Under the pieces are notes generated by a model that worked only from the letters and a program-made list of their open reading frames with translations, did no database searches and was not told where the DNA came from. Shown one piece after another: positions 42,172 to 64,000 of a stretch of DNA of 64,000 nucleotides. Location: sequence record MN871451.1. One strand, written 5' to 3'. Each line of letters starts with the position of its first letter. Positions within the stretch are counted from its first letter, which is position 1. The position numbers and the translations under genes were made by a program.

Positions 42172-43833
42172 TTACTGGACGATTCCGATATTATTACCAA
42201 TTTTACCATCAAAATCCGGCGAAACTCCCGTTGTACCGTTACCGATACAAGGACTATTCATTTTGACTTTAATATTGAGTAAAGCTTCTTTTAATCCGCT
42301 GAAAGCGCTATTAGACAAACCATTGATGAACGCTGGGTTGCTGAATAGATTACTTTCTTCCAGAAATCCTGTGGAAGTGGGTTGTACACCATTCCATTTT
42401 TCAGAATAGAAGACATTATTTTTGAGTTTAAATTTACCTAATAACCCTGGGAAACCGGACACCGTACTACCTACCACAAGTTCCGTAGCTGTTTTATTGG
42501 TGTAATAAAAAATGTTGCTATCAAGCGTCAAACTGAGTGCCGTTGCATTGTCATCGGCCTGCGGGTTTATAGCTATCGCATTATCGTTACTTGTAGTGAC
42601 CGTATCAATGAACACACAGTTCCGTACAACATTATCATAGACGTAGCGAAACGCAGAGGTTTTTTGCCAAAATTTATCTGCTGTATTGGTGGTTCTCGCT
42701 ACTCCATCGTTAAATGAAATCACATATTCGATGACGTTACCGATCGACCCAAAACCAAGCGTATAGTACAAAGTATACGCATCATTGGACAATGGCGTGT
42801 ACCCTTTAGAACTGTACCAGCTGTTACTGAAAGGTCCTTGGATAATCATTGAACCGCGGGCGTTGTTTGAAGTATATCCATAACGCGCCACGCAATAGTG
42901 ACAATGATAATCGAAGTCAATAGTTTGACGGTCAGGGTAAGCCGGGCCGGCGCCGTGGATTTCGAAATTCTGTAATGTCAGATAACGTGTTCCAGAGAAC
43001 CAAACCGGGACATCGGCTTGAGACGCACCTGTTGCGGTATTGTACACGTTGTAACGGTAACTGGAATAGTACAGTCCGTCCACACCCGTCGCCATGTCGT
43101 CGCCAATGACATTCCGCGATTGATTTTTACTCGCTGCCCAACCAATGAACACCGCCGAGTTAATGATGTTCGTAAACGAACAGTTGATCACCCTAAAACC
43201 ATAACTTTTCTTCTGGTCACCGTGATAAGTCGTTTTGTCCGAGAGATCTGGGTTACCTCTCAATTGTACACCGGCATTCACGTTGTCGAACGTACAGTTA
43301 CTGATTAAGAGTTTATGGGCAATGTTATTAAGCCCGGCATAATCGACCAAACTGTTCAAACAGAACACCCGATTGATTCCGTTCATCCCCCCTAACGACT
43401 CAGGTGTACCAATAAAGTCAACTTTGTTTAAGGTTAAGTTACAAATATTGTTATTGGCACTATCGCCGATTGGAATCAGGTTAAGGTAAATGGCGGTTCT
43501 TTCTGATCCAGGTTTCGGGGAAATACGAATGTCTTCAAACTTTATTTGGCACGCGTACGCATCAATGATAATCGTATCGTTATTACTGGTGAGTATTGGT
43601 TTGGCGCCCGCACCGTATCTAGTAATAACAGACTGTATACCAGTCTTATTATTAAAGAAACTGGTTGCGGTACGGTTGTAATATGCCAGTTCGTAAGTTT
43701 GCCCTGCTTTAAGGTATAGCGTTAGCGGGTGGACTAGGTTGGCGTCAATCGCTGACTGAATCGAATTAAAGGGATTGCTTTTCGTCCCGGTCCCATTAAC
43801 TGTAGCGGACGAATCAATGTAATAGTAGTTCAT
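42172..43833 (-). CDS. Right-handed beta-helix (pectin-lyase-like) putative depolymerase, no anchor domain
   Basis: YYIDSS----GTGT--NPF-SIQ-AI...YLKAG-TY N-cap, then repeats such as ISNCTFDN, INCSFTN, VRNCVF; GAGG RBS before ATG 43833. Confidence 0.72.
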   Translation of the reverse strand: MNYYYIDSSATVNGTGTKSNPFNSIQSAIDANLVHPLTLYLKAGQTYELAYYNRTATSFFNNKTGIQSVITRYGAGAKPILTSNNDTIIIDAYACQIKFEDIRISPKPGSERTAIYLNLIPIGDSANNNICNLTLNKVDFIGTPESLGGMNGINRVFCLNSLVDYAGLNNIAHKLLISNCTFDNVNAGVQLRGNPDLSDKTTYHGDQKKSYGFRVINCSFTNIINSAVFIGWAASKNQSRNVIGDDMATGVDGLYYSSYRYNVYNTATGASQADVPVWFSGTRYLTLQNFEIHGAGPAYPDRQTIDFDYHCHYCVARYGYTSNNARGSMIIQGPFSNSWYSSKGYTPLSNDAYTLYYTLGFGSIGNVIEYVISFNDGVARTTNTADKFWQKTSAFRYVYDNVVRNCVFIDTVTTSNDNAIAINPQADDNATALSLTLDSNIFYYTNKTATELVVGSTVSGFPGLLGKFKLKNNVFYSEKWNGVQPTSTGFLEESNLFSNPAFINGLSNSAFSGLKEALLNIKVKMNSPCIGNGTTGVSPDFDGKIGNNIGIVQ

Positions 43834-43844
43834 TTTTACCTCAA

Positions 43845-45839
43845 TCAACTGAGCGTAGTGTGGATATCGATCCAGGTATCATTCGGGATATCTACATAAT
43901 CTCCCAACGCTGTCGTGACCGCACCGGTGGTAGTATCAGCGGTGTAAAGAATTTTTCTCACGCCGATAGTAATGACTTTGGAAACGTCCGATTCGATTAC
44001 CGCTACCAGGTTTTGAATACCCGAGCCAAAGGACCCAAATGGAGGTGTGATTTTCCAGGCCACCGAAGAAGTCCCTGTGGAGGCCCCTGTGATCGTATAT
44101 TTCCCTGTCGATACTCGAGCAGCTGTCACTGTTCCTAGTCCAGCGTAGCCACGGTTGATAGCAGATAAAGTATCGTTAGCGGAGAACTCTCCCGAGGTGA
44201 CGAATGACCCGCGAGTGTTGGCTGAAAGATTATTCGTTAATCGAATCACTGCTCCGCGTGTCTGAGCATACGTCCCATTGTTGAGCTGAACAGCGACGTT
44301 GGTAGTCAGCGACTCCGTAACGGGGAGGTACACGATCCCGGAGGGCTCAGTCGTAACATAGCTGTTTAATACAGTATTGATGGTTACTTTCGCGACGCCA
44401 TCGGAACCAGGCGGGTCAGCACGTAAGGGAATAAGGGAAGAGTTCTCAGAACGAACCGCTAAGCGCGCATAAAGCGTTGAAGTGTTGGCCGTCGCATCTC
44501 GCACCACTCCAAAACGTACCGTTCCTGAACTGTAACGCAGATCTCCTCGAGAACGAAGTGACGTAATTCTAAGGTAGTAACGCAGTGTGTTTGCGTTGAC
44601 GGTAGTCACATTCGAGGGTTTCGATTGGAATTCAATCAAGTAAGCGCATACAGCTTCCGATAAACCCGCACCCCCAGAATAAATACCGCTGAATACCGAG
44701 CCTTGAATATTGTCATTGACCGTCACCAATTTAACCCAAGACTCCGTGCTGAGCCAATCGGTTGGGTTAGTAGAAGAATTCAATAAAGCACTTGGTAAAA
44801 GGTCGGCTGTAACAATCTCTTTAGCTACGCGTTTTACGGCATCGGGAAAAGGCGCAGCAAAGTTTGTATACAGCCCGGGACCTGCTAAATAGGCTTTCAC
44901 TGAACCATCTGCTTGGGGTAGAAAAATAATAGACGAAGAGAGAGTATCGTCTTCCGCGCCGCTGACCGGAAAGCGAGTGATGCTTCCTAACCGCGACCCG
45001 GCACCATAACCGTAAGGCTCCGTTACAGGGATAGCCATTCTGGCCGCCGTCATGACACCATTTTTAATCGCATAGGTCTGGAGACGACCTCTCTGATCAA
45101 TAACCAACGCGCCTTTGTTATTCTTACCGCCAAAAACAATACCTGCAATCCCTTTTGGGTCGTTTGGTCTAGCTGTCAGATCAAATTGTCCGTTGGTTTT
45201 AATTCTTTCCCAGAAATCAATAGTCTCGCTTCTTACGTCAACTGGGAGAGTACCGCCCGTTAATAGTTGCGACCAACCGTCTGCTAGTGTAACGTTATTC
45301 CCTGAGGAATCCGTCACCACAAGGTTGTCGCCGCTCTGTGCCCAATGGTCAACAGTGAGAGCAGAATTGTTGCTGAAATAAAAACGGAGCGATGTAGTGT
45401 CGATGACTACCATGATCCCCGAGAGCACTAACCCTTTCTTTAAAACGACTATATTATCGCTTCCGAACCCCGCGTTCTGACAGAGCCCGCTAACAAACCC
45501 ACGATAAACACTCCCAATAATTTTACTGTAAACAACGTTATTGATCTGCTTACCGTCCTTATCGAGAAGCGATGTATAGGTCCCACCCCCTTGATTGAGA
45601 TACCCGTTAACAAATGACCGAGTATCGTCGGTGTAAACGAAGAAGGGTTCGTTCTTTTCTGTCCCAGCTAATCCTAATTCGATAGTGTCAAAGGCACTTT
45701 CGAAATTTAATACCGAGCGCAACGAAGAAAGAGTGATCTGGTTTGTTTCGGTAGGAACCGTCACTATAGGGACCATTGAGTTCTCAGGGACGCTAGCCGC
45801 ACTCCCTAATTCCGAAATTTTTTGAGTATCATTAGACAT
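43845..45839 (-). CDS. Tail fibre with KISEL anchor and non-enzymatic receptor-binding tip
   Basis: Shared N-terminal anchor; C-terminal R-STGKYTITG...W-I--P...DIP--TWIDI resembles enterobacterial phage fibre tips. Confidence 0.75.
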   Translation of the reverse strand: MSNDTQKISELGSAASVPENSMVPIVTVPTETNQITLSSLRSVLNFESAFDTIELGLAGTEKNEPFFVYTDDTRSFVNGYLNQGGGTYTSLLDKDGKQINNVVYSKIIGSVYRGFVSGLCQNAGFGSDNIVVLKKGLVLSGIMVVIDTTSLRFYFSNNSALTVDHWAQSGDNLVVTDSSGNNVTLADGWSQLLTGGTLPVDVRSETIDFWERIKTNGQFDLTARPNDPKGIAGIVFGGKNNKGALVIDQRGRLQTYAIKNGVMTAARMAIPVTEPYGYGAGSRLGSITRFPVSGAEDDTLSSSIIFLPQADGSVKAYLAGPGLYTNFAAPFPDAVKRVAKEIVTADLLPSALLNSSTNPTDWLSTESWVKLVTVNDNIQGSVFSGIYSGGAGLSEAVCAYLIEFQSKPSNVTTVNANTLRYYLRITSLRSRGDLRYSSGTVRFGVVRDATANTSTLYARLAVRSENSSLIPLRADPPGSDGVAKVTINTVLNSYVTTEPSGIVYLPVTESLTTNVAVQLNNGTYAQTRGAVIRLTNNLSANTRGSFVTSGEFSANDTLSAINRGYAGLGTVTAARVSTGKYTITGASTGTSSVAWKITPPFGSFGSGIQNLVAVIESDVSKVITIGVRKILYTADTTTGAVTTALGDYVDIPNDTWIDIHTTLS

Positions 45840-45865
45840 ATTTGTTTTCCTGAAGAAAGCTAACT

Positions 45866-45910
45866 GGTCATACGAAACACAAAAGAGAGGAGGGATTAAA
45901 ACCCCTCCTC
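45866..45910 (-). promoter_or_regulatory. Hairpin plus TGTTTCGTATGACC late-promoter module
   Basis: GGTCATACGAAACA at 45866-45879 on +; stem GAGGAGGG/CCCTCCTC at 45887-45910. Confidence 0.65.
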
Positions 45911-45915
45911 GTGTT

Positions 45916-48291
45916 CTACCAAGTTAAATCAATATTTCGTATAGTTAATCGCTGAAGATTGATGGTGTCTCCCGCAGCGTTGTTACGAAGAATAACGTTC
46001 AAAGTAAAATCGGCGGACGTGATAGGGTCAATGTTCCCGATGGCGCGAAAAGGTTTGATTGTCCCATTATCGTTAAGTACCGCAGTAATAACAGCAAAGC
46101 CACCGATAATGCTAATGCTACCTTCTATGTTGAAAATCGACCCGCCAGCGGCCTGCGTCAAAGAAGGACCGACTAGTACCCGTGTAGGCGACGTGTTATC
46201 CAAAAAACCAATTCCAATTGTTTTCGCCCCTAAGTTACCCGCGGTGGAACCCTCTAGTTTGAAAGTGATTTCATCATTGAGACGAATAGACCCTACGGGG
46301 TAGTTAATGACCTTATAGACCGATCCTGGAGTCGAGTCTGTGATTGATACACTGTTTTCAATCACGTTGTCGTTTCCGTGGAAAGTGAATCGGGAACTGT
46401 TAATCAGTTTCACTCGATTTTTTGTTGCAATCGCCGCTAAAGATGAAATGGTAATAGGGCCCGTTAAATCAATTAACCCCTCAATAGAATCGTTCGCTAC
46501 GAAAGCCCCGCCATTTACTGACGAGATGATTGCCTTAAGTCCTTTAATAGGGTTACTGATTCCTGCCGAAGTCATCGTCCTTAAAATTGCTACGTCTGGT
46601 TTAATACCAATATAATTGATGTTTTTGAACTGGCAGTTCGTTACCAATGAATCCGCAGCAGAATGGTACGTATCACAAATTACCGCTGTTTTCGTGACGT
46701 AATTTATCGTGATATTTTCAAACAGGTTATTGCTACAAGGAACACGATCACCACCATAACTCTCGAAGGATAAAATGTTATTACTGTTTGTCACCCCGAA
46801 GATCATGCCGTTTCGAATGGAACTATTAGTGAAGGAGGAGAAACGGCAAATTACCGACGGCGCCGCGGTATTATTGAATACCAGTGTAAAACCATCAATA
46901 TGACAGTTATCGCCGCTTTCTGCCCATGTTATCATGGCGTTAGCATTAAGGGTCGTATCGGCAATCGCAGTGAGGTTGGTAATGCGAGTATCGTGAGAAC
47001 CAAATGCCAGTTCACTGATTCTTCCGCGAAAAGTGATATTGATATTATCAAAACGCGTACGACAAAAAGTATTCCCATAAACCACCGCGCGGGCTTTACC
47101 TGAGATGTTACGGAAAACGCAATTAAAAGTTGCGCTGTCGCCAGTCCAATGGTCCCAAGTGTCTACAACAAAGTCTTGAACGATGGCGTTTTCACAAACA
47201 AATAGTGGCTGATTAAAACGAGCATTGTAAGCGGGCTGATTTGCTTGCATAATGGTCAGATCAGAACCAGTATAATCGACAGGAATATCCAACGTGATAT
47301 TGCTACCGGATACACCTATTACTTTACAAAGCTTCATGTAAAACGGGATAAGAAAACCACCGTTAAGAATCCCTCGCACGGATGAGATCCTCACTAAATC
47401 GCCTGTTTTGTATTTACTGACGAGAGAGGGGTCAATGCCAACCACGTTACTCCCGTAGGTGGAGGTAAGATTGTTCTTAGGGACATTACTCACATATTCC
47501 GGGTGATAATTGCCCGGTGCGAAAATAGCGCCTTGCATCCAAGTAGTATCAATAGGAGTTAATGTTTTTAATGTTGCCCCGTTTCCATTAAGGACAGAAT
47601 TACTAGGGATATAAATAGGTCCAGAAATGGAATAGGTACTTTTACAAAACGAGACGGGGTATTTTCCGGCCGCAACTTTTAGTGCTTGTTGGATGGCAGA
47701 AAGTGAGTCCGTACCTCCCGGGACTGCACCAAAAAACTCTGGATAAATTACGGGCTCAGAGAGTACCCTTTCCCAGTAGAATCCGTTTCCCGCGGCGATT
47801 GTCCCGCCGTCATCCGTTGCTGATCCGATTCCGGCGATAAATTCCCCGCCGCCTGTTTTTCCACCCGCTACCCAACTTTTCAACTTTACGCGTTGTCCTG
47901 CGTACAGAGGCGATAGTGTCCGTAACTTAGCGAAGGAATCTACACCGTTAGTAAAATAATCTAACCCTCGTAACGTCTGCCCGGAGATGTACCGAACAGC
48001 GACGCCATTAATATCTACGAGCGGCGTGTAAGAACCCCCACCTTGGTTGACGTAACCCTGTACCGCGGTTTTGGTTACATCCGTGTAAACAAAGTAAGAC
48101 TCTCCCTTCTCCGTTCCATCTGCACCTTCTGCGATTGAGTTGAAGGCTTTGTCGAACAACAAGACTGAACGCAGTGTTGAGATATCTGTGTTATTGGTCT
48201 CCGTCTGTTCAGAGACCACAGGGAGTAGAGTGTTTTCAGTCAGCGTAGTAGCAGGGTTCAACTCGCTAATTTTCTGTATTTCATTAGACAT
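45916..48291 (-). CDS. Tailspike / polysaccharide depolymerase with KISEL anchor
   Basis: Anchor, linker module GQRV-L-SW--GG-TGGGEF...DDGG-I...FYWER, pectate-lyase-3-like PEFFGAVPGG-DS--AIQ-A, beta-helix repeats. Confidence 0.85.
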   Translation of the reverse strand: MSNEIQKISELNPATTLTENTLLPVVSEQTETNNTDISTLRSVLLFDKAFNSIAEGADGTEKGESYFVYTDVTKTAVQGYVNQGGGSYTPLVDINGVAVRYISGQTLRGLDYFTNGVDSFAKLRTLSPLYAGQRVKLKSWVAGGKTGGGEFIAGIGSATDDGGTIAAGNGFYWERVLSEPVIYPEFFGAVPGGTDSLSAIQQALKVAAGKYPVSFCKSTYSISGPIYIPSNSVLNGNGATLKTLTPIDTTWMQGAIFAPGNYHPEYVSNVPKNNLTSTYGSNVVGIDPSLVSKYKTGDLVRISSVRGILNGGFLIPFYMKLCKVIGVSGSNITLDIPVDYTGSDLTIMQANQPAYNARFNQPLFVCENAIVQDFVVDTWDHWTGDSATFNCVFRNISGKARAVVYGNTFCRTRFDNINITFRGRISELAFGSHDTRITNLTAIADTTLNANAMITWAESGDNCHIDGFTLVFNNTAAPSVICRFSSFTNSSIRNGMIFGVTNSNNILSFESYGGDRVPCSNNLFENITINYVTKTAVICDTYHSAADSLVTNCQFKNINYIGIKPDVAILRTMTSAGISNPIKGLKAIISSVNGGAFVANDSIEGLIDLTGPITISSLAAIATKNRVKLINSSRFTFHGNDNVIENSVSITDSTPGSVYKVINYPVGSIRLNDEITFKLEGSTAGNLGAKTIGIGFLDNTSPTRVLVGPSLTQAAGGSIFNIEGSISIIGGFAVITAVLNDNGTIKPFRAIGNIDPITSADFTLNVILRNNAAGDTINLQRLTIRNIDLTW

Positions 48292-48313
48292 GTCTTTAAT
48301 CCTGAATGGGGAT

Positions 48314-48360
48314 GGTCATACGAAACAAGGCAATGAGGGGACCTAGGTCCCCTCATTGCC
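48314..48360 (-). promoter_or_regulatory. Perfect 32-bp palindrome plus TGTTTCGTATGACC module
   Basis: GGTCATACGAAACA at 48314-48327; GGCAATGAGGGGACCT/AGGTCCCCTCATTGCC at 48329-48360. Confidence 0.68.
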
Positions 48361-48366
48361 TATAAC

Positions 48367-48588
48367 TTAAGAGCCTTCAATGTCACTGGCTACGAGTTCC
48401 AATTGAGCCGCAATAAACCGTGCATCGGTATCGATGACCACCGAAATATATTGATCCATTCCGTAGATATCTGCCCAAGCCAAATCTTTCAATTTAGCGT
48501 CCAGTGCACTGATGGTCGTTTCTTTCCCAACTAAGTCTTCTCGAGTTTGACAAGAAAGGATGCGAACGGTGTCGCCTACTTGAAACAT
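48367..48588 (-). CDS. Small SH3/KOW-like protein inside the spike array
   Basis: AAGGAA RBS at the spike stop; MFQVGDTVRILS...LVGKETTI; about 73 aa. Confidence 0.55.
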   Translation of the reverse strand: MFQVGDTVRILSCQTREDLVGKETTISALDAKLKDLAWADIYGMDQYISVVIDTDARFIAAQLELVASDIEGS

Positions 48589-48601: not shown

Positions 48602-50647
48602 TTAAGAAATCCAAACGTGTTCATTGGTGAAATATGCCGTTCCAACAAAACCGTTTAAGTACTCTTGAACTTTTGCCTTGACTGTACCGTTTGGCGCACG
48701 TAACCAGACCCACACGTTATTCCAATCGGTTGTCACCGCAGATACAGATTTGATTGACGATTGTATTACGTTCCCGGCAGAGTCGTAAAAATCCACTCGA
48801 AGTGCGACGTAACCAGCCGTCAACGAGGTAATTTTGATTTCGGCCTCCGCGTGGAAAATATCTCCGCCGCGCAGTGTCACGTCCTGCCAGTAAGAGACGT
48901 TACGTACGCTTCCTTGTGTAATTTTTCGTGAGTGCGGTGAATTAGGGTTAGAATAATTCGTAGTATCAATCGTATAAGTGAGGTCGGCGTTAGTGTAACT
49001 CGGTGTCCATGCGGCAGTTTGATACTGGTTGATCAGAATAACGTTAAGGGCACTACAAGGTCGCATGGGACGACTGGCGTTATCCATGTTTCCAGAGGTC
49101 ATTTTGTTCCTCACCCTTAAGGTCCCGATCAACTGGTAGTTATCCCCCTCTACACCTACGATCTCGGTAGTTCTCCTGACTCCCGTCATGTATTTACTGG
49201 TGTCAGTTCCATCAATATCGACGTGGGCACCGCCAGTGTTGGTAATGAAGACGAGGTAAGGGCGACCCGTACTATTTTCTACCGGAATACCGCTCCATGA
49301 GTTCGCGTTCGGTCCGCCTCCCATTGTCCCCCCTTTCATGATCAAATAGGGTTGGTTTTTGGTTGAGGTGTACGAAAGTCGAATATGAGGGTTGTTGTTA
49401 TTGTTTTCCAAGTGACAACCGTGGAGCTCGACGTTAGATTGATAAATATCAACTGAGATGTCGCAATAATCAAAACTGGTTCCAAAGAACCTGACATCGA
49501 TACTCGAGGCACTCCCTGATAAGTAGAGCCCGGTACCGTCGAAAGTAAAATTACAACAATCTGCAATCACGCCGCCGTAAATAGTCACGTTCTCATTGGA
49601 ATCAGTATTCGCATAAAAGGCCATCCCTCGGCGCCAACATTGTCCGATGATCGGACTGTATAAACGAATGAGGTAAGCACTCTTCCCGTTAAAACAAACT
49701 CCGTCCCTAAACCCAGAGACCTTAAGATTGTAGAAGGAAATATTGTGCGCATCGACACCAAATGACACGCCGTCTACGACACTGTTAGTGTCGGGTTGAT
49801 GAGTATTAATTAAGGTACGCTGAACGCGAATATTATCAAATTTCCCTGGATTAGCCGCAGGTGACAAATAGCCGCTGATTGTTAAGGTATAACCCGTCGT
49901 AACAGAGGGCAGCGACAAAAGTACTGCATTACGCATATCGATCACTAAATCGGTCGGGAAATTTACGGTACTGACCGCGTATACTTTCCCTAAACACGTT
50001 AGTGCAATGCCATTTTTGGCACAGTAGTTGACCGCTTTTTGAATATTACTAGTATCGTCCAGTACGCCGTCCCCGACTGCACCAAAGTCCTCAAAAGACA
50101 ACTGATCTGTAATAATCCGTTGCCAGTAGAATTCATTCCCGGCAGCAATCGTGCCGTTGTCATCCGCATTTACCCCTAAACGCGCAACGAAAATACCCCC
50201 ACCCGTAACCCCGTCTTTGTAGTAACTCTTCAGCGTGACACGCTGTCCTTGGTACCATGGTTTAAGCGTCCGTAATGCGTCGAAACTCTCTACTCCTTGT
50301 AACATGAATAAAGAGTTGACAATATGCGCATTCGTCGCGTAGCGAACTTGTGTCGTACTGTCTGACATTAATGCAGAGTAAGTCCCGTTCCCTTGGTTTA
50401 CATACCCCAAGACATAGTCTCGTGTACTGTTTTCGTAAACAAAGAAAACATTCCCCTCTGTAGTTACACTGAGCCCGGCAGCAATCGTGCTGTACGCGTT
50501 CTCAAAACCTAACGTTTCTCTGAGGGTACCAATACTAACTTTTTCGGATTCGTTTCCATTCGCTTCTGAGAGCGGAAGAAACGCATTCTCTGACGGATTA
50601 GAGCTGGGCGATAGTTCAGAAATTTTCAATGCAGTGATATCGGTCAT
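48602..50647 (-). CDS. Tailspike / depolymerase with KISEL anchor and C-terminal carbohydrate-binding-like domain
   Basis: Start at MTDITALKISEL (GGAG RBS); FEDFGAVGDGVLDDT--IQKA; beta-helix; C-terminal jelly-roll-like VDFYDSAG. Confidence 0.87.
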   Translation of the reverse strand: MTDITALKISELSPSSNPSENAFLPLSEANGNESEKVSIGTLRETLGFENAYSTIAAGLSVTTEGNVFFVYENSTRDYVLGYVNQGNGTYSALMSDSTTQVRYATNAHIVNSLFMLQGVESFDALRTLKPWYQGQRVTLKSYYKDGVTGGGIFVARLGVNADDNGTIAAGNEFYWQRIITDQLSFEDFGAVGDGVLDDTSNIQKAVNYCAKNGIALTCLGKVYAVSTVNFPTDLVIDMRNAVLLSLPSVTTGYTLTISGYLSPAANPGKFDNIRVQRTLINTHQPDTNSVVDGVSFGVDAHNISFYNLKVSGFRDGVCFNGKSAYLIRLYSPIIGQCWRRGMAFYANTDSNENVTIYGGVIADCCNFTFDGTGLYLSGSASSIDVRFFGTSFDYCDISVDIYQSNVELHGCHLENNNNNPHIRLSYTSTKNQPYLIMKGGTMGGGPNANSWSGIPVENSTGRPYLVFITNTGGAHVDIDGTDTSKYMTGVRRTTEIVGVEGDNYQLIGTLRVRNKMTSGNMDNASRPMRPCSALNVILINQYQTAAWTPSYTNADLTYTIDTTNYSNPNSPHSRKITQGSVRNVSYWQDVTLRGGDIFHAEAEIKITSLTAGYVALRVDFYDSAGNVIQSSIKSVSAVTTDWNNVWVWLRAPNGTVKAKVQEYLNGFVGTAYFTNEHVWIS

Positions 50648-50674
50648 TTCACGACTCCGATGTAAACAAAAAAT

Positions 50675-50778
50675 GGTCATACGAAACAAAAAAGAGAGGA
50701 GCTTTTCCGTATCCTTCTCTAGTTAATGTGCAATAAACCAAAACGTAATCTTTCAAGCTGTTAATCGTATGTACGATT
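50675..50778. promoter_or_regulatory. Divergent late-promoter region of the spike array
   Basis: GGTCATACGAAACA at 50675-50688 (minus-strand TATG) and AATCGTATGTACGATT at 50763-50778 (plus-strand TATG within an imperfect palindrome). Confidence 0.6.
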
Positions 50779-50807
50779 GACTATTAGAGAGCTTAAGAGG
50801 CAAAATA

Positions 50808-54155: not shown

Positions 54156-54160
54156 TAAGT

Positions 54161-54200: not shown

Positions 54201-54225
54201 GATTCTTTCACTTGAGGATAATATA

Positions 54226-56193: not shown

Positions 56194-56202
56194 AATAAAC
56201 TC

Positions 56203-56246
56203 TAGAGAGGGGCCTTTTGGCCCCTCTCTATTTGTTTTCCTATGAC
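56203..56246 (+). terminator. Hairpin plus TATGAC module
   Basis: TAGAGAGGGGCC-tttt-GGCCCCTCTCTA; TATG at 56241-56244. Confidence 0.68.
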
Positions 56247-56286
56247 TATTTTTACAGCCCTATTGCCGACAATGAGGTTTCTTGCA

Positions 56287-59043
56287 ATGGCCAATAACAC
56301 AAGAAAAATTTCCGAACTTTCGAGTAAGGGTATTGTTCCAGAATCTGCTCTTTTGCCAGTGGCAGTAGCGGGAGCAGAAAAGGAAACATACCGTACCACG
56401 TTAAATAATCTTCGATCAAATCTTCTCTTTGAAAATGCTTACGAAACCCTCGCAGAAGGTATTGCGGCTACTGTCAAAGATGAAATTTTTTACGTCTATA
56501 CGGACGATAGCCAATTCTACGTCGCAGCGTTCACCAACGTTAACGGTGCTTCTGCCACGGCTGTCTATAAAGACAATACTCCGGTTATCTACGGCACCGG
56601 AAAAATGATGGCGGACGGTAAGTTCGGCTCCTACACGTCATATGTCAGTTACCTTTATAACAACGGTTCCGCTACCGGCGGCGAAACGGAAATCGCATTA
56701 CCTTTCGACTGCTTCGATGTCTCAGAGATGTTCTTGAATGGTAGTCATCAGTTCAAGGGGTTGAACTACACGTTTGATCGGTTATCGAACAAAGTCAAAT
56801 TAAAAGGGCCATTAACGGCGGGTGCTTTCGTTGTCTTCTACGTAAGACCTTACCCGGGTTCGCCTATCACGCCAGTAGAACCTGGTATTACCGACTACGT
56901 CAACGTAACGTGGCTATATAACGACGGCGCAGCAGTGGGTGGAGAAACGTCACTTACCCCTCCGTGGACATTCAAAACAGTCCCTGCTATTTACATCAAC
57001 GGCTCAAAACAAGTCCTGAATAAGCACTATGAAGTTGATAGCACCGGATTGAAGATTAACCTTTCGAAAGCGCTGAATGCTAACGACATCGTTGAAGTCT
57101 TACTGGGTGGTTCTCGGTCGGTCATCACCGCACAGGTATCGGGAACACCGGCAGAAATTCTTTTGACGCTGGGGCAAACGACAGGTGCGGCAAAAGTCAA
57201 TACCAGTTATGGTGTGAGCTTAGAGCAAGTCGTTCAAGGTGTTTACGGCGTGGAATCAGTGGATTCACTGCGGTCTCGTCAACCGGGATTTGAAGGGGAA
57301 CGTATTAAAGTAAAATCTTACGCAGTTGGTACTAAAATTGGCGGCGGGGAATTTATTGGTCACATCGGCGGAGGTGTAACAGAAGACTATGGTACAATCA
57401 TTGTCGGTGGGAATTTCTATTGGGAGCGTGTTATCCCCAATTCAGAAATTAATGTTTCATTTTGGGGCGCTCAACCAGGGACAGATATCACGGTACCTTT
57501 ACAACGTGCGATCGCATACGTCCAGAAATTAACAATAGGGACTAATTTTTACAGTCGTCCTTCGATCAGTATTTCAGCAGGGAGCTATCTGATATCTGCA
57601 ACAATTGTCGCACCGACATCAATCAGTATCGTTGCGAAAGGTAATGTTAACATTGTTGCATCGTCTAACTTTACAGGGTCGTACCTGATCAAGTTCCAAA
57701 ATACTGACGCCTTAACGAATGTCAATCTTTGGGAAGGTGAGAACCTTTCGGCTGATGGCGGTGTATTGCGACTGGATGGACAAGGCCGTGCTATAACTAC
57801 TCTTTCTGGAATATTTATCGGTAACGAAGCAGCTAGTATGTCCAACGCCAGAAACGTTTCATTCCGTAATGTCGTTGTGACCGAATGCTATCGTGCATTG
57901 ACGTTCTCTTCCATCGATACTTATCTATTCTCTGCGACTAAATGTCGTTTCGAACAAAACGGTATTAGTTTGAATGTTCCGTCTACAACGTCCAGTAACT
58001 CCGGCGAACGTATGTCGTTTACTAACTGTACATTTGGCGGTACCAACGAACATCACGTATACCTTGCAGCACCTGGTTTTGATGTTTCGTTCATGAACTG
58101 CAGTTTTGACTTTACTAACGGTAGTATATTAGTCATTACGGGATCGTCAGGTTATAATGCAGTTAAGTTTACTGACTGTCATGCCGAAGCTTGGAATGGG
58201 TACGTATTAGATGTAGTTGGCTCGCCGTCTAACTGTGCGGTATACTTTACCAATTGCGATTTCCTTCCTCGTTTGCGTTCTGGTCAGAAATCAGACTCTA
58301 CCTTAGGACTGGCCAACAGCCCATCTCGACCACTCTTTAACGGAAACCAGGTTGCAGTGTATTGGAATGGCTCTGAGATCAAACACGAAGTCAAACCATA
58401 TACCGAAGATCTCTATTTACACTCTTCCGGTAAACCCGTGGCAGTTAGTGGGTATGTAAAAGACCCCTACTATAACGTCCCGTCTGCAAACGCTATTATT
58501 AATAGCGGTTTTGATTTCAGTGCGGAAACTACTGGAACAACTGTCACGAGTACTTCCTCTACGTTAGCGAAATTTTCTGTTGGATACATCGCGGGTATGA
58601 CAGGGGTAATTGCCGACAGAACAGATGTTACAGGTAAAGTTCTTGCTTTAACGGGTACAAGTTCTGCGAGTAACGTGACTTTAGTTGGAACAGAATATTT
58701 TGCCTGTAAAGCAGGAGATGTGTTTGGGGTTGTTGCCGCAATGCAGCTACTGAACTCGACGGGGAATAACCGTATTACCCCATACGTTTATTTTTACAAT
58801 GATCAAAAAGTATTATTATCTGGCGGCCAAGTAGTTGGTAACAATACCGCGATGGGAAGTGTATTTTCCGACACTACCTTACCAAATTACTCCGCCGGTA
58901 CAACACGATTCATCGCTTCTAGTCCGGTGAAAATAAGAGCGCCTGTTGGCGCAGCGTTCGCTCGTGTTGCAGCGACTTTTTCTGACATTACAGGTACGGT
59001 AAACATATCCAGATTGTCACTATTCCGTTTTGAGACAGAGTAA
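56287..59043 (+). CDS. Tailspike with KISEL anchor, two tandem adaptor-like repeats and a beta-helix depolymerase domain
   Basis: Start at MANNTRKISEL (GAGG RBS); repeats YLYNNGSATGGETEI... and WLYNDGAAVGGETSL...; SGER...SFDF...HAE. Confidence 0.87.
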   Translation: MANNTRKISELSSKGIVPESALLPVAVAGAEKETYRTTLNNLRSNLLFENAYETLAEGIAATVKDEIFYVYTDDSQFYVAAFTNVNGASATAVYKDNTPVIYGTGKMMADGKFGSYTSYVSYLYNNGSATGGETEIALPFDCFDVSEMFLNGSHQFKGLNYTFDRLSNKVKLKGPLTAGAFVVFYVRPYPGSPITPVEPGITDYVNVTWLYNDGAAVGGETSLTPPWTFKTVPAIYINGSKQVLNKHYEVDSTGLKINLSKALNANDIVEVLLGGSRSVITAQVSGTPAEILLTLGQTTGAAKVNTSYGVSLEQVVQGVYGVESVDSLRSRQPGFEGERIKVKSYAVGTKIGGGEFIGHIGGGVTEDYGTIIVGGNFYWERVIPNSEINVSFWGAQPGTDITVPLQRAIAYVQKLTIGTNFYSRPSISISAGSYLISATIVAPTSISIVAKGNVNIVASSNFTGSYLIKFQNTDALTNVNLWEGENLSADGGVLRLDGQGRAITTLSGIFIGNEAASMSNARNVSFRNVVVTECYRALTFSSIDTYLFSATKCRFEQNGISLNVPSTTSSNSGERMSFTNCTFGGTNEHHVYLAAPGFDVSFMNCSFDFTNGSILVITGSSGYNAVKFTDCHAEAWNGYVLDVVGSPSNCAVYFTNCDFLPRLRSGQKSDSTLGLANSPSRPLFNGNQVAVYWNGSEIKHEVKPYTEDLYLHSSGKPVAVSGYVKDPYYNVPSANAIINSGFDFSAETTGTTVTSTSSTLAKFSVGYIAGMTGVIADRTDVTGKVLALTGTSSASNVTLVGTEYFACKAGDVFGVVAAMQLLNSTGNNRITPYVYFYNDQKVLLSGGQVVGNNTAMGSVFSDTTLPNYSAGTTRFIASSPVKIRAPVGAAFARVAATFSDITGTVNISRLSLFRFETE

Positions 59044-59081
59044 AAGGAGGAGGGGGTTCCCCTCCTTAAAAGGAAAAATAA

Positions 59082-61247
59082 ATGCAAACTAATTTTATTC
59101 AGCCAACCGGAAACACCTCTATACAGTCTAGTGCAGAGGTTCTTTCTCAATTATTGAACATCCCGCAATCGACCATTGGGTCAATTGAACGGGGCGTGGA
59201 TTTAACAAACCTTTCGTTTGCGGTTGACCCCGTGACTAAAGAGATTTACAACGTTACAGCTGTACTGGGTTCAGTAACGGGAATGGTAGCTTCAGGGACT
59301 ACCGCAGTAGTGAGCACAGAAAATGGAAGTTTCCCCGTTAATGCATTACCGGCACAATTAATTACAGTCAGTTTTCCGTCGATTACTGATTTAAAGAATT
59401 TCAATCCGTGGTTCGATAAACAGATCTTAAAGCTGATCAGCTATAACTTAAATGGTACTGTAGGCGGCGGGGAATTTTATTACGATGCCAGTGATACGAG
59501 CACTGCTGATGACGGTATGTTCACTATTGTAACTTCATCAGGAAAACGCCTCAAACGTCTTAATTCCGACAAGGTACTTAAAGTAGAGTGGGCGGGGGTA
59601 GAACCCGGCGGCGATATCAGCGCGGCGTGGCAAAAAGCCATAGACTTCTCTGCGGCTGTTGCTACGAAGTCGGGTAATTTTTATCAGTGTCCGTCAGTTG
59701 AGCTGCCCGGCGGTAAATATACCTTAACAAAAGGTGTTGTTTCCCCATCCTTCGTTAGGACTATTGTTAACGGGTCAATCTATATCGATTGTAAGGCCCT
59801 TAATGATACACACGTTGCTGCGTTTTGGATAAAAGGATTCAAAGGGAGTTATCAGCAACAAGGGATTGGTGGTTACACATTGTCCTCTAATGGTGGCGGT
59901 ATTTATTTTGAAGGACCAGGACGATCAACGGTTTCTTCCTTGGTCGGAATTAAAATTGGTAATACGGCCACCGAGAATAGTGGCAATGGATTTACTAACT
60001 GCCCGCCTAAAATCACTGGAGTAACGGTTAGACAGTTCCGCGCTGGTTTACAAATCACAGAATACGATGCGTATCTCATTAGCGTAGAGTATTGTGATTT
60101 TGGTAACTCTGGCTCAGCGGTTCAAATAGGTACAGGATCTAGAACGTCCCCTTGGAACGCCGGGGAACGAATTGCGTTTACTCACTGTACATTTTACGGT
60201 GGCGGAGAATATGGCTTTATTGAGGCCATTGTTGCTGGGTTCAATATTGATTTTACAAACGTAAGTTTCGATTATACTGCGACACACGTTTTCAATTTCG
60301 GAAGTAACGCTAACGGCAATAACTTCCGCGTGACTAACTCACACACTGAAGCAGTTGGGGGTTACATTGTGAACGACGTGGCTGGATTAAATGACAGTTA
60401 CGTTACATTCATTAACAGCGATTTCATGATGACACTTGCTAGTGGTTCACAAGTAGGTAACGATAGTAATGGAAACGCGGTATCTAACGCTATATCAAGA
60501 CCACTGTTCAATAACCAGTCGGTAAATATCTATCTTGATATTTCTGGCCCGAGCGCTGCAACGCAAACTCCTTACGATTATTATATTTTCCTTTGTACCC
60601 CAGCTTCCCGCGGCGTATCGGTAGGTAAATCGATTACTCCATATGCTAACCCACGCCCCTCTAAAATAAGCTCATTATTGAGCAAAGGTTGGAACTTCGG
60701 TAATGAAACCGATGGTACTGCTGTCACTCAAGGAAAAGTACTTACTGATTGGACATTCCGTTTAGTTAGCGGTGGGACAGCAGCAGTGGCGACGCTGAAT
60801 GCTAACGGGGATAAATGTGTTACACTTACACCGACAAACAATACATCGAACATGTATGCGTATTGGTCTAACAATGAATTAATCGAAGTATCGCAGTTAG
60901 AAAGCTATTCTACTACCTTTGCTGTCCAGTACGGTTCCGCTGATACTACTTTGACCGCAGGTAATCAACTAAGTTCAAACATTCGTTATACGTGGTACGA
61001 TAACACCCAAACTCAGATCTCAACAGAAACTTACAGCTATGATCTTTATTCGATAATTAAAGATACTGCTGCCCCGAACGCTGCATCGGCAACAACGAGA
61101 ATTGTTCCAATCATTCCTACAAGCCGTGTGGCTCCGCCAAGAGCAAAATTCTTGCGAGTCGAATACGGTATTGTCAGGGTTAATTATCCTTTAAAGATAT
61201 GCTACAATTTTATTTACAAAGGTAATAATGTAACTGCTACAGTATAA
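59082..61247 (+). CDS. Anchor-less tailspike / depolymerase
   Basis: AGGA RBS; N-terminal MQTNFIQPTGNTS in place of KISEL; linker GTVGGGEFYYD---DDG; AGER...SFDY...HTE. Confidence 0.85.
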   Translation: MQTNFIQPTGNTSIQSSAEVLSQLLNIPQSTIGSIERGVDLTNLSFAVDPVTKEIYNVTAVLGSVTGMVASGTTAVVSTENGSFPVNALPAQLITVSFPSITDLKNFNPWFDKQILKLISYNLNGTVGGGEFYYDASDTSTADDGMFTIVTSSGKRLKRLNSDKVLKVEWAGVEPGGDISAAWQKAIDFSAAVATKSGNFYQCPSVELPGGKYTLTKGVVSPSFVRTIVNGSIYIDCKALNDTHVAAFWIKGFKGSYQQQGIGGYTLSSNGGGIYFEGPGRSTVSSLVGIKIGNTATENSGNGFTNCPPKITGVTVRQFRAGLQITEYDAYLISVEYCDFGNSGSAVQIGTGSRTSPWNAGERIAFTHCTFYGGGEYGFIEAIVAGFNIDFTNVSFDYTATHVFNFGSNANGNNFRVTNSHTEAVGGYIVNDVAGLNDSYVTFINSDFMMTLASGSQVGNDSNGNAVSNAISRPLFNNQSVNIYLDISGPSAATQTPYDYYIFLCTPASRGVSVGKSITPYANPRPSKISSLLSKGWNFGNETDGTAVTQGKVLTDWTFRLVSGGTAAVATLNANGDKCVTLTPTNNTSNMYAYWSNNELIEVSQLESYSTTFAVQYGSADTTLTAGNQLSSNIRYTWYDNTQTQISTETYSYDLYSIIKDTAAPNAASATTRIVPIIPTSRVAPPRAKFLRVEYGIVRVNYPLKICYNFIYKGNNVTATV

Positions 61248-61250
61248 ATT

Positions 61251-61291
61251 AATTGAGAGAGGGAGTATCCCCTCTCTCAATTTTCTATGAC
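61251..61291 (+). terminator. Hairpin plus TATGAC module
   Basis: AATTGAGAGAGGG-agtatc-CCCTCTCTCAATT; TATG at 61286-61289. Confidence 0.68.
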
Positions 61292-61319
61292 TTCGTCTTA
61301 TTCACATAGAGGTGTAATG

Positions 61320-63305
61320 ATGTTAACTGATTTTAATAAACCGCGAGGGAGTAACGGTGAATATTCTCTTTTAACCGTGGGGTCCGTAACTGAGTTAAGG
61401 GCTTTAGAGCCTTGGTTTGACGGCCAACGTGTTCTATTAAAACGAGCGGTTGTGGGCGGACCTGACGTAAACGAAATAATGACGTACAGGGCCAGTTCAA
61501 CAGTCGCAGATAACGACTACAGTGTATTTAAAACAGCTAAAGGAGCTAACTGGCTCCTCGATACAACAAAACCTATTAACGTATGGATGGCTGGTTTTTC
61601 TGTCTCTTTAAATAACCTATCCCAGTGCATCAACAAAATAACCAGTGACATCGTCAAAATTGTTATCGGTAGAGGCTATATCGCAAATGGAACTTACCGT
61701 CTGCGCGTACCGCCATTAGATAACGCTACCGGCGAAACAGTTTATAAAATGACAGCGACAGTGCGTATCCCGCCGTTTGTTTCTGTTATTGTTGACACTA
61801 ACCAGACTTGGGATTTTAGTGCCTTTACTACCGGGAATGGCGTAGAAATAACCGGTGAGTTTACTGGACTTACTCGATCTGCAGCAAACCCCTTCACTAA
61901 TAACGCAGGGAGTTCTGCCAGCTACACTGAAGTACTGGACACTAATGCACTTTTCATTTTAGGTCCCGGGTACGACAAAACTACGTTCCATGGTATTTCT
62001 TTAGGAAATACAACATACCCATCTGGTGGTTTTGTCCATACTCGCGAAGTAAAAATCACTGGCGTAAAAGTTGCGCAATTTTATGGCGGAATCAGGATTG
62101 GTTCTACTGATACGTATTTAGATGTGGTGGAGAACTGCGCTTTTTATCGAAACGGATATGGTATCGTCACCGATGCAGGCGTGAACTGCGTTAACTCCGG
62201 TGAGAACATGCGCTTCGTCAACTGCCTCATTGGTGACAACTATTTGGGCGGAGTCTACCGAAACGATACTGTCCATATGTTTAAATATTTTGGTTGTAGT
62301 TTCGACTATAATACAAACGATGTTGTTTTTTATTCGCCAGTGAACATAGGTCAGGATACGTTGATCGAGTGTCACGTTGAAGGCTTCCGTTATTTAGCCA
62401 ATTGCCCAACTCGTACAACAGGCGCTGGCGAAAATAATTTTAAAATGATCGGCGGAAATATCTTCATGTACGCGTTTGTTAATGATCCTTACCGTGGAGT
62501 CAGGACAATTGGTTTTGCGACCACTACACGCACCGCTATCGACCTTGACAACGTAAACATTTTCTGTTACGGCCCGCACGTTAATAGCGCTTATGGGAGT
62601 TACAAGGCGTACGATCCCACTAACCAGATCAAAATAAGAATACGTTACCCTTTACGCGGACAAACCTATCGTTTTCTGCCATCTTACGATACCTCTGACG
62701 GTTACATTTTGAATAATACAGGGCTACTGTTTAATGGTACCGCTGGCGCGGCCTTACCGACTGCCAGGGCAATTGGACAGTGGTACGTAGTTGCTAACGG
62801 TTCAACTATCGTCTATGGCTCTGCAGCAGATGCAGATTCGGATGGCCTGATCCCAGTGACAATTACTGCTACAAGTACAACTAACTCGGTTAACCTTCTC
62901 TGGGGTACGCCAATTAATAACAGTAACAGTCAACAGAAATTTCATGTGTCCTGTTCAGTCAAAGCCGGTGCTGCAACTACTGGCAACGTTTACGTACGTG
63001 GTGTGTGTCGTTTAGTTTCATCTCAGACTTTTACTAATAACGCCACGACTAACGTAGTGTCAATGAGCGAAAATTATAGTGGATATGCCTTGGGTCCACA
63101 GCAAGATATTTTAAACTCACTAACAAAAACTGGCATCACCCTTACCGCAGACAATTACATGGGTACCTACATGCTTTCATGCGATACCGGTACGTCTCAG
63201 TACGGTTACGCTGGACTTAACTTTACCGGTTTCGTTGGTACCATCCAAGTTAAGCTGCCTGCGGTTTGGTTTTCCGATCAACATCCGACTTTAGGGTATT
63301 TGTGA
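61320..63305 (+). CDS. Anchor-less tailspike / exopolysaccharide depolymerase
   Basis: GAGGTG RBS; MLTDFNKPRGS N-terminus; SGEN...SFDY...HVE beta-helix motifs; CBM-like C-terminus. Confidence 0.83.
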   Translation: MLTDFNKPRGSNGEYSLLTVGSVTELRALEPWFDGQRVLLKRAVVGGPDVNEIMTYRASSTVADNDYSVFKTAKGANWLLDTTKPINVWMAGFSVSLNNLSQCINKITSDIVKIVIGRGYIANGTYRLRVPPLDNATGETVYKMTATVRIPPFVSVIVDTNQTWDFSAFTTGNGVEITGEFTGLTRSAANPFTNNAGSSASYTEVLDTNALFILGPGYDKTTFHGISLGNTTYPSGGFVHTREVKITGVKVAQFYGGIRIGSTDTYLDVVENCAFYRNGYGIVTDAGVNCVNSGENMRFVNCLIGDNYLGGVYRNDTVHMFKYFGCSFDYNTNDVVFYSPVNIGQDTLIECHVEGFRYLANCPTRTTGAGENNFKMIGGNIFMYAFVNDPYRGVRTIGFATTTRTAIDLDNVNIFCYGPHVNSAYGSYKAYDPTNQIKIRIRYPLRGQTYRFLPSYDTSDGYILNNTGLLFNGTAGAALPTARAIGQWYVVANGSTIVYGSAADADSDGLIPVTITATSTTNSVNLLWGTPINNSNSQQKFHVSCSVKAGAATTGNVYVRGVCRLVSSQTFTNNATTNVVSMSENYSGYALGPQQDILNSLTKTGITLTADNYMGTYMLSCDTGTSQYGYAGLNFTGFVGTIQVKLPAVWFSDQHPTLGYL

Positions 63306-63499
63306 TGATTTATATCTACAAAGATACTGTGCGAGAGAACGTTTATTTTCTTTCCAGAATTGATTTGGGGGAGGCTATCGTTTTCTTTGAAGAAGTAGAA
63401 AACTATCAGGAAGCCGCACTTGGGTTCTTATCGGAAAAGGGTCTGGATGGTTCTTTTCTTTTAGAAGACAGGACTAGCGAAGACGATTCCGGTAGTTGA
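63305..63499 (+). CDS. Small acidic protein coupled to the spike (possible chaperone)
   Basis: TGATG overlap with the spike stop; 64 aa. Confidence 0.5.
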   Translation: MIYIYKDTVRENVYFLSRIDLGEAIVFFEEVENYQEAALGFLSEKGLDGSFLLEDRTSEDDSGS

Positions 63500-63523
63500 A
63501 TTGTTTTATAGGTTGTTCATAGC

Positions 63524-63562
63524 GAGTAGGGCCGATCGGCCCTACTCTTGTGTTTTTATGAC
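63524..63562 (+). terminator. Perfect 24-bp palindrome plus TATGAC module
   Basis: GAGTAGGGCCGA/TCGGCCCTACTC at 63524-63547; TATG at 63557-63560. Confidence 0.68.
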
Positions 63563-63606
63563 GATCTAGATACCCTCTTATTTACCCAGACTATACAGGT
63601 ACCGAA

Positions 63607-64000
63607 ATGGATAAGTCTAGTTTAAAAATTACTGAATTACCGGCGTTGTCGGTAGCCTCTGAGAATGGGTTTATTCCCATTGCCCAAGTTAAAGAAGAAA
63701 ACGACACGTATAAAACAACACTCCGTGCGTTACGTGAAAGTATCATGTTTGAGAACGCCTACTCGAGTACTGCGGCGGGTGTTTCGGCAACGGTTCCTGG
63801 CGATGTGTTCTTTGTTTACACTGACGATACTAAAGAGCATGTTCAAGGCTGGGTTAACAGTGCCGGTGGCGCCACCCCGTTATTGAATGCTAATAGTGAA
63901 CAAATCACTTACGGTACTTACGCGCTGTTGAATAAAGCTCTGAAGAATAAAGGGGCGATTGTACAGTGGGTTTATAATGGCGGGTTAAGTAACGGCGGGG
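63607..64000 (+). CDS. Tail fibre/spike with KITEL anchor, partial; runs off the window end
   Basis: Not in the ORF track. Hand translation: MDKSSLKITELPALS...FENAYSSTAAG...FFVYTDDT...VQWVYNGGLSNGG. Confidence 0.82.
   Translation, partial: MDKSSLKITELPALSVASENGFIPIAQVKEENDTYKTTLRALRESIMFENAYSSTAAGVSATVPGDVFFVYTDDTKEHVQGWVNSAGGATPLLNANSEQITYGTYALLNKALKNKGAIVQWVYNGGLSNGG

Follow-up and report, generated by a model that had tools for sequence, protein, structure and literature searches.

The receptor-binding protein locus of Klebsiella jumbo phage KpYy_2_45 and its relation to the tail-fibre locus of phiKp24

How many receptor-binding proteins (RBPs), and of what kind, are encoded by the run of large genes at positions 42172-64000 of a 64,000-nucleotide (nt) stretch of phage KpYy_2_45, and is this array a system of its own or a version of one already described? 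The stretch analysed, referred to below as the window, corresponds, with 100% identity, to positions 124001-188000 of record MN871451.1, an unannotated genome of 302,439 bp with Klebsiella pneumoniae as its stated host. The region is very probably the main RBP locus of a Siatvirus-like member of the Chimalliviridae infecting K. pneumoniae, homologous to the hyperbranched tail-fibre locus of phage phiKp24 (vB_KpM_FBKp24) and in the same position. An arsenal of this kind in a nucleus-forming phage is already established by phiKp24, and the KpYy_2_45 locus is a new mosaic of the same system.

Genes of the locus and their predicted folds

The region is an unbroken run of large RBP-type open reading frames (ORFs). 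Ten genes were counted, nine of them complete (W1-W9; 553-1115 amino acids (aa), with gene starts refined against orthologues) and one represented by its start (W10). W1-W4 lie on the minus strand and W5-W10 on the plus strand, diverging from a control region at 50648-50807. In comparisons with the closest homologues, no stops or frameshifts were found in any of the ten. The genes are listed below; anchor refers to the N-terminal domain and body to the part that follows it.

42172-43833, minus strand: W1, 553 aa; anchorless, predicted right-handed beta-helix, GH136-like; 90% identical to phiKp24 gp313 (RefSeq gp100); translationally coupled to W2
43845-45839, minus strand: W2, 664 aa; anchor phrog_27731, tail-protein body phrog_20024, Phage_tail_C_2 end; 95% identical to phiKp24 gp312 (RefSeq gp101)
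45916-48291, minus strand: W3, 791 aa; anchor 73% identical to phiKp24 gp310 over 249 aa; body like KP34 gp57
48602-50647, minus strand: W4, 681 aa; 85% identical to phiKp24 gp310 and 98% to KpLz-2_45 and KpZh_1 proteins
50808-54155, plus strand: W5, 1115 aa; anchor (54%) and last 78 aa (63%) like phiKp24 gp308; central ~920 aa unrelated to gp308
54226-56193, plus strand: W6, 655 aa; anchor 64% identical to phiKp24 gp307; whole protein 99% identical to an LPKP23 protein
56287-59043, plus strand: W7, 918 aa; orthologue of phiKp24 gp306, N-terminal 409 aa 86% identical; 98% identical to an LPKP23 protein
59082-61247, plus strand: W8, 721 aa; no phrog_27731 anchor; body related to W7, phiKp24 gp304 and K64-1 S1-1
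61320-63305, plus strand: W9, 661 aa; 96% identical to phiKp24 gp303; same body on another N-terminus in MJ359
63607-64000 (gene end at L002 4286), plus strand: W10, 892 aa, the first 131 in the window; anchor and branching-type N-terminus, 78% identical to phiKp24 gp301 over 234 aa

Past the window end follow the rest of W10, W11, W12, four small ORFs, W13 and W14. A dUTPase gene borders the cluster on this side, as it does in the relatives. The whole cluster holds 14 RBP genes. A preliminary description of the window had counted an array of at least 11 RBPs or depolymerases that continued beyond it; the continuation was found (W10 is cut at 64000 and the cluster goes on to W14), and the count holds for the whole cluster and not for the window, with its nine complete genes and one cut.

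Two solitary RBP genes were found outside the cluster, at record positions 265423-267660 (minus strand, 745 aa) and 245383-247689 (minus strand, 768 aa). Both have strong tail-protein PHROG matches. Their N-termini are 48% (745 aa) and 55% (768 aa) identical to those of phiKp24 gp168 and gp196, respectively, and their bodies differ. RBP-like genes number 16 genome-wide (14 in the cluster and two solitary).

Family evidence was obtained by PHROG scans, Pfam scans (to E 1), searches of solved structures, and structure models of W1 and W2. Matches to tail, tail-fibre, tailspike or exopolysaccharide (EPS)-depolymerase families of PHROG were found for W2-W8 and W10; W1 belongs to a PHROG family of unknown function and W9 had no PHROG match. 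Solved structures were matched only by the W1 family profile, W3 and W7. The W3 body matched the solved K63 depolymerase KP34 gp57 (PDB 8BKE; E 5e-125, ~40% identity). In W7, residues ~100-410 matched solved tail fibres and tailspikes in their N-terminal domains, the body has a Beta_helix Pfam match, and the protein also matched the solved tailspike 23sh. The AlphaFold model of W1 (predicted local distance difference test score (pLDDT) 88; predicted template modelling score (pTM) 0.91) was best matched by the GH136 beta-helix enzymes LnbX, BsaX and TnX, followed by beta-helix lyases and phage tailspikes, and on this model the W1 body is confidently predicted to be a right-handed beta-helix of the GH136-like type.

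Other genes were connected to depolymerases by homology. The orthologues of W4 and W9, phiKp24 gp310 and gp303, are published depolymerases for K61 and for K64/KL178, respectively (DepoCatalog 2026, PMC13385381); the identity of 85-96% to phiKp24 enzymes described as beta-helical supports a predicted beta-helical fold for W4 and W9. The central ~920 aa of W5 share ~40% identity with proteins annotated as tailspikes or depolymerases in Klebsiella phages of 50 kb and 157 kb. W6 has a body with 28% identity to W4 across 465 aa and gives a weak pectate-lyase-like Pfam match, and the W8 body is 28% identical to the W7 body (605 aa), 35% to phiKp24 gp304 (430 aa) and ~25% to K64-1 S1-1; distant homology thus supports a probable tie of W5, W6 and W8 to depolymerases.

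A beta-helix or depolymerase relationship is in this way supported for eight of the nine complete genes, all but W2, the beta-helix itself being supported in W1 by the model, in W3 through 8BKE, and in W7 through Pfam and the solved tailspike. Nine beta-helix genes had been proposed beforehand: direct or close-homologue evidence bears this out for W1, W3, W4, W7 and W9 and distant homology for W5, W6 and W8, and the proposal fell short at W2 (model pLDDT 30), which may be the non-enzymatic fibre of the preliminary description. An RBP/depolymerase arsenal as such is supported by the tail-type PHROG matches, the phiKp24 orthology, the W1 model and the solved-structure matches of W3 and W7. Homology suggests K64/KL178 for W9, K61 for W4 and K63 for W3 as candidate capsule specificities.

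Relatives, anchors and exchanged bodies

KpYy_2_45 is placed indirectly in the Chimalliviridae, as a phiKZ-type nucleus-forming jumbo phage, through 98.7% backbone identity to the Siatvirus KpLz-2_45. The nucleus-forming reading is adopted because the phage encodes a homologue of the nuclear shell protein chimallin, an RNA polymerase in split subunits and a giant SLT-domain protein, and because the nearest genera, Siatvirus and Maaswegvirus, have been moved by the international virus-taxonomy committee (ICTV) into this family; it agrees with the phage type given in the preliminary description. The chimallin homologue (record 19947-21839) is 80% identical to phiKp24 gp083 (tblastn), and gp083 matched solved chimallin/PhuN chains with E 3e-6 to 5e-6. 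The RNA polymerase subunit genes, of the phage multisubunit type, are adjacent (window 27266-28897 and 28913-33400, plus strand; PHROGs 2986 and 3148), with a weak Rpb1 domain 1 match among these ORFs. The giant protein (2197 aa; window 20628-27221, minus strand; phrog_3201, giant tail protein) has an SLT lytic transglycosylase domain.

Thirteen related jumbo-phage records were identified. The whole region 42172-64000 is held in common with KpXa_1 and KpLz_1_41 (99.4% identity), and parts of it occur in ten further ~300-kb Klebsiella jumbo-phage records representing seven further phages, among them phiKp24, LPKP23, KpZh_1, KpLz-2_45, MJ359 and Centimanus. In phiKp24, KpLz-2_45, MJ359 and LPKP23 the locus lies between the gene for a 188-aa structural protein and the dUTPase gene. 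In the literature, no paper was found on KpYy_2_45 or its Siatvirus-like relatives, nor on their RBPs. Record MN871451 is labelled 'Serratia phage' and UNVERIFIED_ORG despite its stated host, as are the sister records MN871445-MN871453; these are mostly unannotated, so that their RBP repertoires are invisible to annotation-based surveys.

An N-terminal anchor of ~100 residues (phrog_27731) is common to W2-W7 and W10 (29-51% pairwise identity); W8, W9 and W11 lack it. W7 and W10 have longer N-termini, orthologous to those of phiKp24 gp306 and gp301, for which gp10-like docking folds have been reported, gp306 being proposed as the trunk or primary branching fibre (Ouyang et al. 2022, PMC9700779). 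The ~100-residue domain would fix each protein to the virion, with a variable body after it, and the longer N-termini of W7 and W10, with their branching-type domains, would provide docking sites for other fibres. Where evidence exists, the body would be a right-handed beta-helix polysaccharide depolymerase for one or a few capsule types, and the set of bodies would decide which capsule types the phage can approach.

The locus is bordered on the left by the following features.

41557-42123, plus strand: virion structural protein of 188 aa (phrog_2935), found next to the locus in all relatives; W13 and W14 have an N-terminal domain of its fold family
42131-42160, no strand assigned: hairpin with a 13-bp stem, a bidirectional terminator separating W1 from the convergent flank gene

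The N-terminal ~150 aa of W13 and W14 (L002 9543-13671) fall, as does this flank gene, in the virion-structural-protein family phrog_2935/1037.

Identity to phiKp24 is uneven along the genome. The 8.5 kb adjoining the cluster are 97.5-98.7% identical to Siatvirus-like phages and 75% identical to phiKp24. Six of the 14 cluster genes have full-length phiKp24 orthologues (W1, 90%; W2, 95%; W4, 85%; W9, 96%; W13, 76%; W14, 73%), and the bodies of the other eight are unlike those of phiKp24. Because W1, W2, W4 and W9 show 83-91% nucleotide identity to phiKp24 on a backbone that is 75% identical, the sequences indicate a probable exchange of cassettes between genera (Siatvirus-like and Maaswegvirus).

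The relatives share different parts of the set. W1 and W2 are absent from KpLz-2_45, KpZh_1, LPKP23 and MJ359. KpLz-2_45 and KpZh_1 carry W4 and W10-W14 with 96-100% identity, the full W10 being 100% identical to their proteins, and LPKP23 carries W6 and W7 with 98-99% identity. The six relatives fetched lack the bodies of W3, W5 and W8, which turned up only in KpXa_1 and KpLz_1_41; that of W8 is near-identical only in KpXa_1, the KpLz_1_41 match being 77% over two joined pieces. Identity to phiKp24 ends at the anchor/body junction in W3, W6, W7 and W10, and both ends are retained in W5. W5 has the appearance of an internal-domain replacement, and a similar body (42%) occupies the W10 slot of LPKP23.

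The set is a mosaic, probably formed by recombination at the anchor/body junction. Its cassettes are shared with Siatvirus-like phages and Maaswegvirus, and at a greater distance also with small Klebsiella phages and with prophages. The slot-and-cassette pattern is already known for Klebsiella phage RBPs and is documented here across two Chimalliviridae genera. The locus acts as a series of fixed slots, marked by conserved anchors, that receive exchanged bodies across genus borders, and its main value is comparative.

The W2-W1 module and putative expression signals

An anchor-bearing protein of the W2 type followed by an anchorless GH136-like beta-helix of the W1 type is encoded twice in KpYy_2_45, by W2-W1 and by W11-W12. 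W11 and W12 are paralogues of W2 and W1 (25-30% identity). Three other phage types also have the two genes side by side, 7-12 nt apart, the N-terminal anchor of the first gene being the only part that differs. Identities to W2 and W1 were 57% and 64% in a 50-kb siphovirus contig, 61% and 64% in a 157-kb myovirus, and 23% and 28% in P2-like prophages.

Window 42172-45839; L002 4333-7893; L015 4191-7680; L018 5001-8866; L019 5001-9559: sites of the module

The W1 family has 35 representatives among 1.84 billion proteins, and no member matches any Pfam family. Its profile matched the GH136 lacto-N-biosidase ErLnb136 (E 8e-20). Residues D301, D306 and D308 are invariant in the family and lie in the part that aligns near ErLnb136 D568/D575; D301 and D308 are spaced by seven residues, as are the Asp acid/base and the Asp nucleophile of GH136, and the correspondence is one of spacing. 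In bacteria, GH136 enzymes need an adjacent partner subunit for activity (PMC7335108). The phage pairs resemble the GH136 systems (LnbX with its partner LnbY; ErLnb136) in fold, in the profile match and in the constant position of W1-type genes beside a specific partner gene. They differ in that identity to W1 in structural alignments is 12-14%, and in that the partner is a helical domain of ~220 aa in bacteria and an RBP-like protein of 600-960 aa in the phages.

By analogy with GH136, W2+W1 and W11+W12 could conceivably be obligate two-component RBP modules of a kind not described before, in which the second gene product needs the first for docking or folding; we regard this as tentative and rather doubtful. 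The first gene of such a module would supply a phage-specific anchor and a conserved body of ~460 aa, and the second an anchorless GH136-like beta-helix glycosidase. The two genes would move together, with the anchor alone being exchanged, among jumbo phages, siphoviruses of 50 kb, myoviruses of 157 kb and P2-like prophages. If true, an obligate module could explain why no activity has been confirmed for phiKp24 gp313 and why gp312 was overlooked. In the literature, no paper was found linking GH136 to phage tailspikes, and the conserved pair of anchor protein and GH136-like protein is the single element of the locus that may represent new biology.

Strong G+C-rich hairpins (8-15 bp stems) were found in eight intergenic gaps. 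Eight of the ten RBP genes in the window (W2, W3, W4, W5, W6, W7, W9 and W10) are preceded, 29-50 nt upstream, by the motif TATG, and at W2, W3, W6, W7, W9 and W10 a T-rich stretch with TATG directly follows the hairpin. A hairpin/TATG module had been described beforehand for most of the genes, and these counts agree with it. Five exact copies of the 10-mer TTTCGTATGA were counted in the window (0.23 expected), four of them before RBP genes and one before the prohead-protease gene. A degenerate version of it gave seven matches (1.6 expected), and a search allowing one mismatch showed no enrichment (6 found, 6.5 expected). The fifth copy of TTTCGTATGA (36624-36633) lies upstream of the prohead-protease gene, so that the RBP genes share the motif with a core late gene. 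Host-type sigma-70 promoters were also considered as the expression signal of the region and were rejected, as they were not enriched (36 found, 36.2 expected).

45840-45915, minus strand: gap upstream of W2; hairpin 45887-45910, then TTTCGTATGA 45868-45877, 33 nt upstream of the W2 start
48292-48366, minus strand: gap upstream of W3; hairpin 48328-48361 (15-bp stem), then TTTCGTATGA 48316-48325, 29 nt upstream of W3
50648-50807, no strand assigned: W4/W5 divergent control region; TTTCGTATGA 50677-50686 (minus strand), 34 nt upstream of W4; TATG 40 nt upstream of W5; weak hairpin
54156-54225, plus strand: gap upstream of W6; hairpin 54157-54188 (14-bp stem), then TTTCGTATGA 54191-54200, 30 nt upstream of W6
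56194-56286, plus strand: gap upstream of W7; hairpin 56203-56230 (12-bp stem), then TTTCCTATGA 56236-56245, 46 nt upstream of W7
59044-59081, plus strand: gap upstream of W8; hairpin 59048-59066, no TATG motif
61248-61319, plus strand: gap upstream of W9; hairpin 61251-61282 (14-bp stem), then TTTTCTATGA 61281-61290, 34 nt upstream of W9
63500-63606, plus strand: gap upstream of W10; hairpin 63524-63547, then a T-run and TATG, 50 nt upstream of W10

W1, W12 and W14 have neither hairpin nor TATG and start 9-16 nt after the preceding gene; three co-transcribed pairs are therefore read, W2-W1, W11-W12 and W13-W14. The late promoters that the non-virion RNA polymerase reads in phiKZ have TATG as their conserved motif, with its G as the transcription start (PMC4666361). 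The signals described here are like the phiKZ late promoters in that TATG follows a T-rich stretch, upstream of eight RBP genes in the window and of a core late gene. They differ in the extended motif TTTCGTATGA, which is specific to the KpYy_2_45 phage group as far as tested, and in being known here from motif placement. The TATG sites are putative phiKZ-type late promoters. Late transcription would then be carried out from them by the phage's own non-virion RNA polymerase, with hairpin terminators insulating most genes and the three pairs being transcribed together.

Two small ORFs (73 and 64 aa) lie among the RBP genes of the window.

48367-48588, minus strand: Ws1, 73 aa; directly after W4; 98.6% identical to phiKp24 gp102
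63305-63499, plus strand: small acidic ORF, 64 aa; directly after W9, in the position of phiKp24 gp111

Neither gave a family match, and both may be assembly factors. The identity of Ws1 to phiKp24 is well above that of its neighbour genes. In the left part of the window are genes for an SMC/AAA-type ATPase (539-3010), an RNase H-domain protein (7101-8759) and a UvsX-like recombinase (10155-11570). A 714-aa ORF (18438-20582) was considered as a chimallin candidate and set aside without a direct test, the chimallin homologue lying at another genome site.

Rival readings and comparison with known systems

The composition of the region could suggest a recently acquired foreign AT-rich island instead of a native locus. 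The GC content is 44.2% in the region 42172-64000 and 47.5% in window positions 1-42171, which hold the adjacent structural and polymerase genes, and the closest homologues of individual bodies outside the group are found in unrelated small Klebsiella phages. Genome-wide, however, windows of 21.8 kb have a mean GC of 45.8% (standard deviation 1.5) and the region stands at the 20th percentile. The preliminary description of the region as more AT-rich than the core thus holds locally, and sliding-window GC shows no outlier. The island was rejected on these genome-wide values and is highly improbable: the locus occupies the same position in all relatives of two genera, the anchors are group-specific, and the RBP genes use the TATG motif of a core late gene (prohead protease, 36624). 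Individual cassettes have been exchanged; the locus itself is ancestral. It is also improbable, if less so, that the array includes several spare genes, decaying or unexpressed, which would leave a functional arsenal far below the number of genes. phiKp24 was plated on nine K-types against 14 predicted fibres, and two genes here lack a TATG motif of their own; against this, the ten genes in the window are full length and uninterrupted relative to their homologues, most have promoter-like and terminator elements of their own, and 11 of 14 phiKp24 proteins were active when produced recombinantly.

A more serious contender, to which we give a little less than an even chance, is that only part of the array consists of capsule depolymerases, and that W13, W14 and perhaps W1 and W2 are structural or secondary-receptor fibres, for lipopolysaccharide (LPS) binding or as scaffold. 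W13 and W14 are the only cluster genes kept in every relative (72-100% identity) while the other slots vary, and their N-termini are of the phrog_2935 virion-structural family and not the shared RBP anchor. Their phiKp24 orthologues gp295 and gp294, together with gp313, are without confirmed activity, and gp312 is not listed as a depolymerase. In phiKp24, however, the orthologues of W13, W14 and W1 were predicted as glycosidases with a beta-helical fold (Ouyang et al. 2022, PMC9700779), PHROG families of hydrolases and tail fibres match the W13 body, and W1 combines a confident GH136-like beta-helix model with aspartates that are invariant across its family. The unconfirmed activity of the phiKp24 orthologues may reflect untried substrates or a missing partner.

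Several further points count against the reading of the region as an RBP and depolymerase locus homologous to that of phiKp24. With E values up to 1 allowed, the Pfam matches of beta-helix or pectate-lyase type remained weak and below the curated cut-offs. Among solved structures, sequence searches with W1 (as a single sequence), W2, W5, W8, W9 and W10 brought no meaningful match, and the structure prediction for W2, from a five-sequence alignment, was unusable for the fold. The structural paper on phiKp24 (PMC9700779) has no mass-spectrometry data, and individual fibres were not assigned by proteomics; gp294, gp295 and gp313 (the orthologues of W14, W13 and W1) have no confirmed depolymerase activity, and gp312, the W2 orthologue, is not among the 14 fibres counted. 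Branched fibres were seen in virions of phiKp24, and the KpYy_2_45 proteins are known from their genes. Among the expression signals, W8 and W11 have a hairpin and no TATG, and TATG is a short motif.

With these points weighed, the main RBP locus remains the preferred reading, and phiKp24 is its closest described counterpart. The phiKp24 locus was described in 2021 together with the tubulin and shell genes of that phage. A hyperbranched apparatus of 14 fibres was then imaged by cryo-electron microscopy (cryo-EM) and cryo-electron tomography (cryo-ET), and nine susceptible K-types were reported (Ouyang et al. 2022, PMC9700779). In 2026, 11 of the 14 fibres were enzymatically confirmed as depolymerases, with their K-types, in a catalogue that also covers a second Maaswegvirus phage and notes jumbo phages with up to 15 RBPs (DepoCatalog 2026, PMC13385381). 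The earlier view that multi-depolymerase arsenals are less described for nucleus-forming phages was therefore not upheld for this syntenic locus. A close relative has been described with a set of the same kind, and the content agrees in part, with full-length orthologues for six of the 14 genes. As an example of such an arsenal, KpYy_2_45 adds little beyond phiKp24, for which structures and assays exist. No close relative has been characterised for the bodies of W3, W5, W8, W11/W12 and the two solitary genes, which are candidates for uncatalogued specificities.

The locus is like that of phiKp24 (Maaswegvirus, Chimalliviridae) in genomic position, gene order, N-terminal anchors, a primary fibre with a long N-terminus (W7, corresponding to gp306) and a hairpin-separated layout, the phiKp24 record annotating terminators and promoters at the same junctions. 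It differs in genus, with a 75% identical backbone, and in having 14 cluster genes against 13 in phiKp24: W3 and W12 have no positional counterpart there, and the gp309 slot is absent from KpYy_2_45. The solitary RBP genes retain only phiKp24-like N-termini. The Siatvirus-like phages KpLz-2_45, KpZh_1, LPKP23 and MJ359 have a near-identical backbone and differ in that each carries its own combination of 11-12 cluster genes.

More distant systems share the principle. K64-1, RaK2 (Alcyoneusvirus) and the Menlow group (KpS110) likewise carry many depolymerase fibres per virion, built from an anchor and a beta-helix; W8 is distantly related to K64-1 S1-1, and W1 is 64% identical to an uncharacterised KpS110 protein. 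These phages are unrelated and do not form a nucleus, and they have other anchors and fewer fibres (5-11). The branched complexes of the Ackermannviridae (CBA120 TSP1-4) and of G7C are built on T4 gp10-like domains, and the N-terminus of W7 matches the N-terminal regions of solved fibres and tailspikes; those complexes comprise four spikes, compared with 14-16 RBPs in KpYy_2_45.

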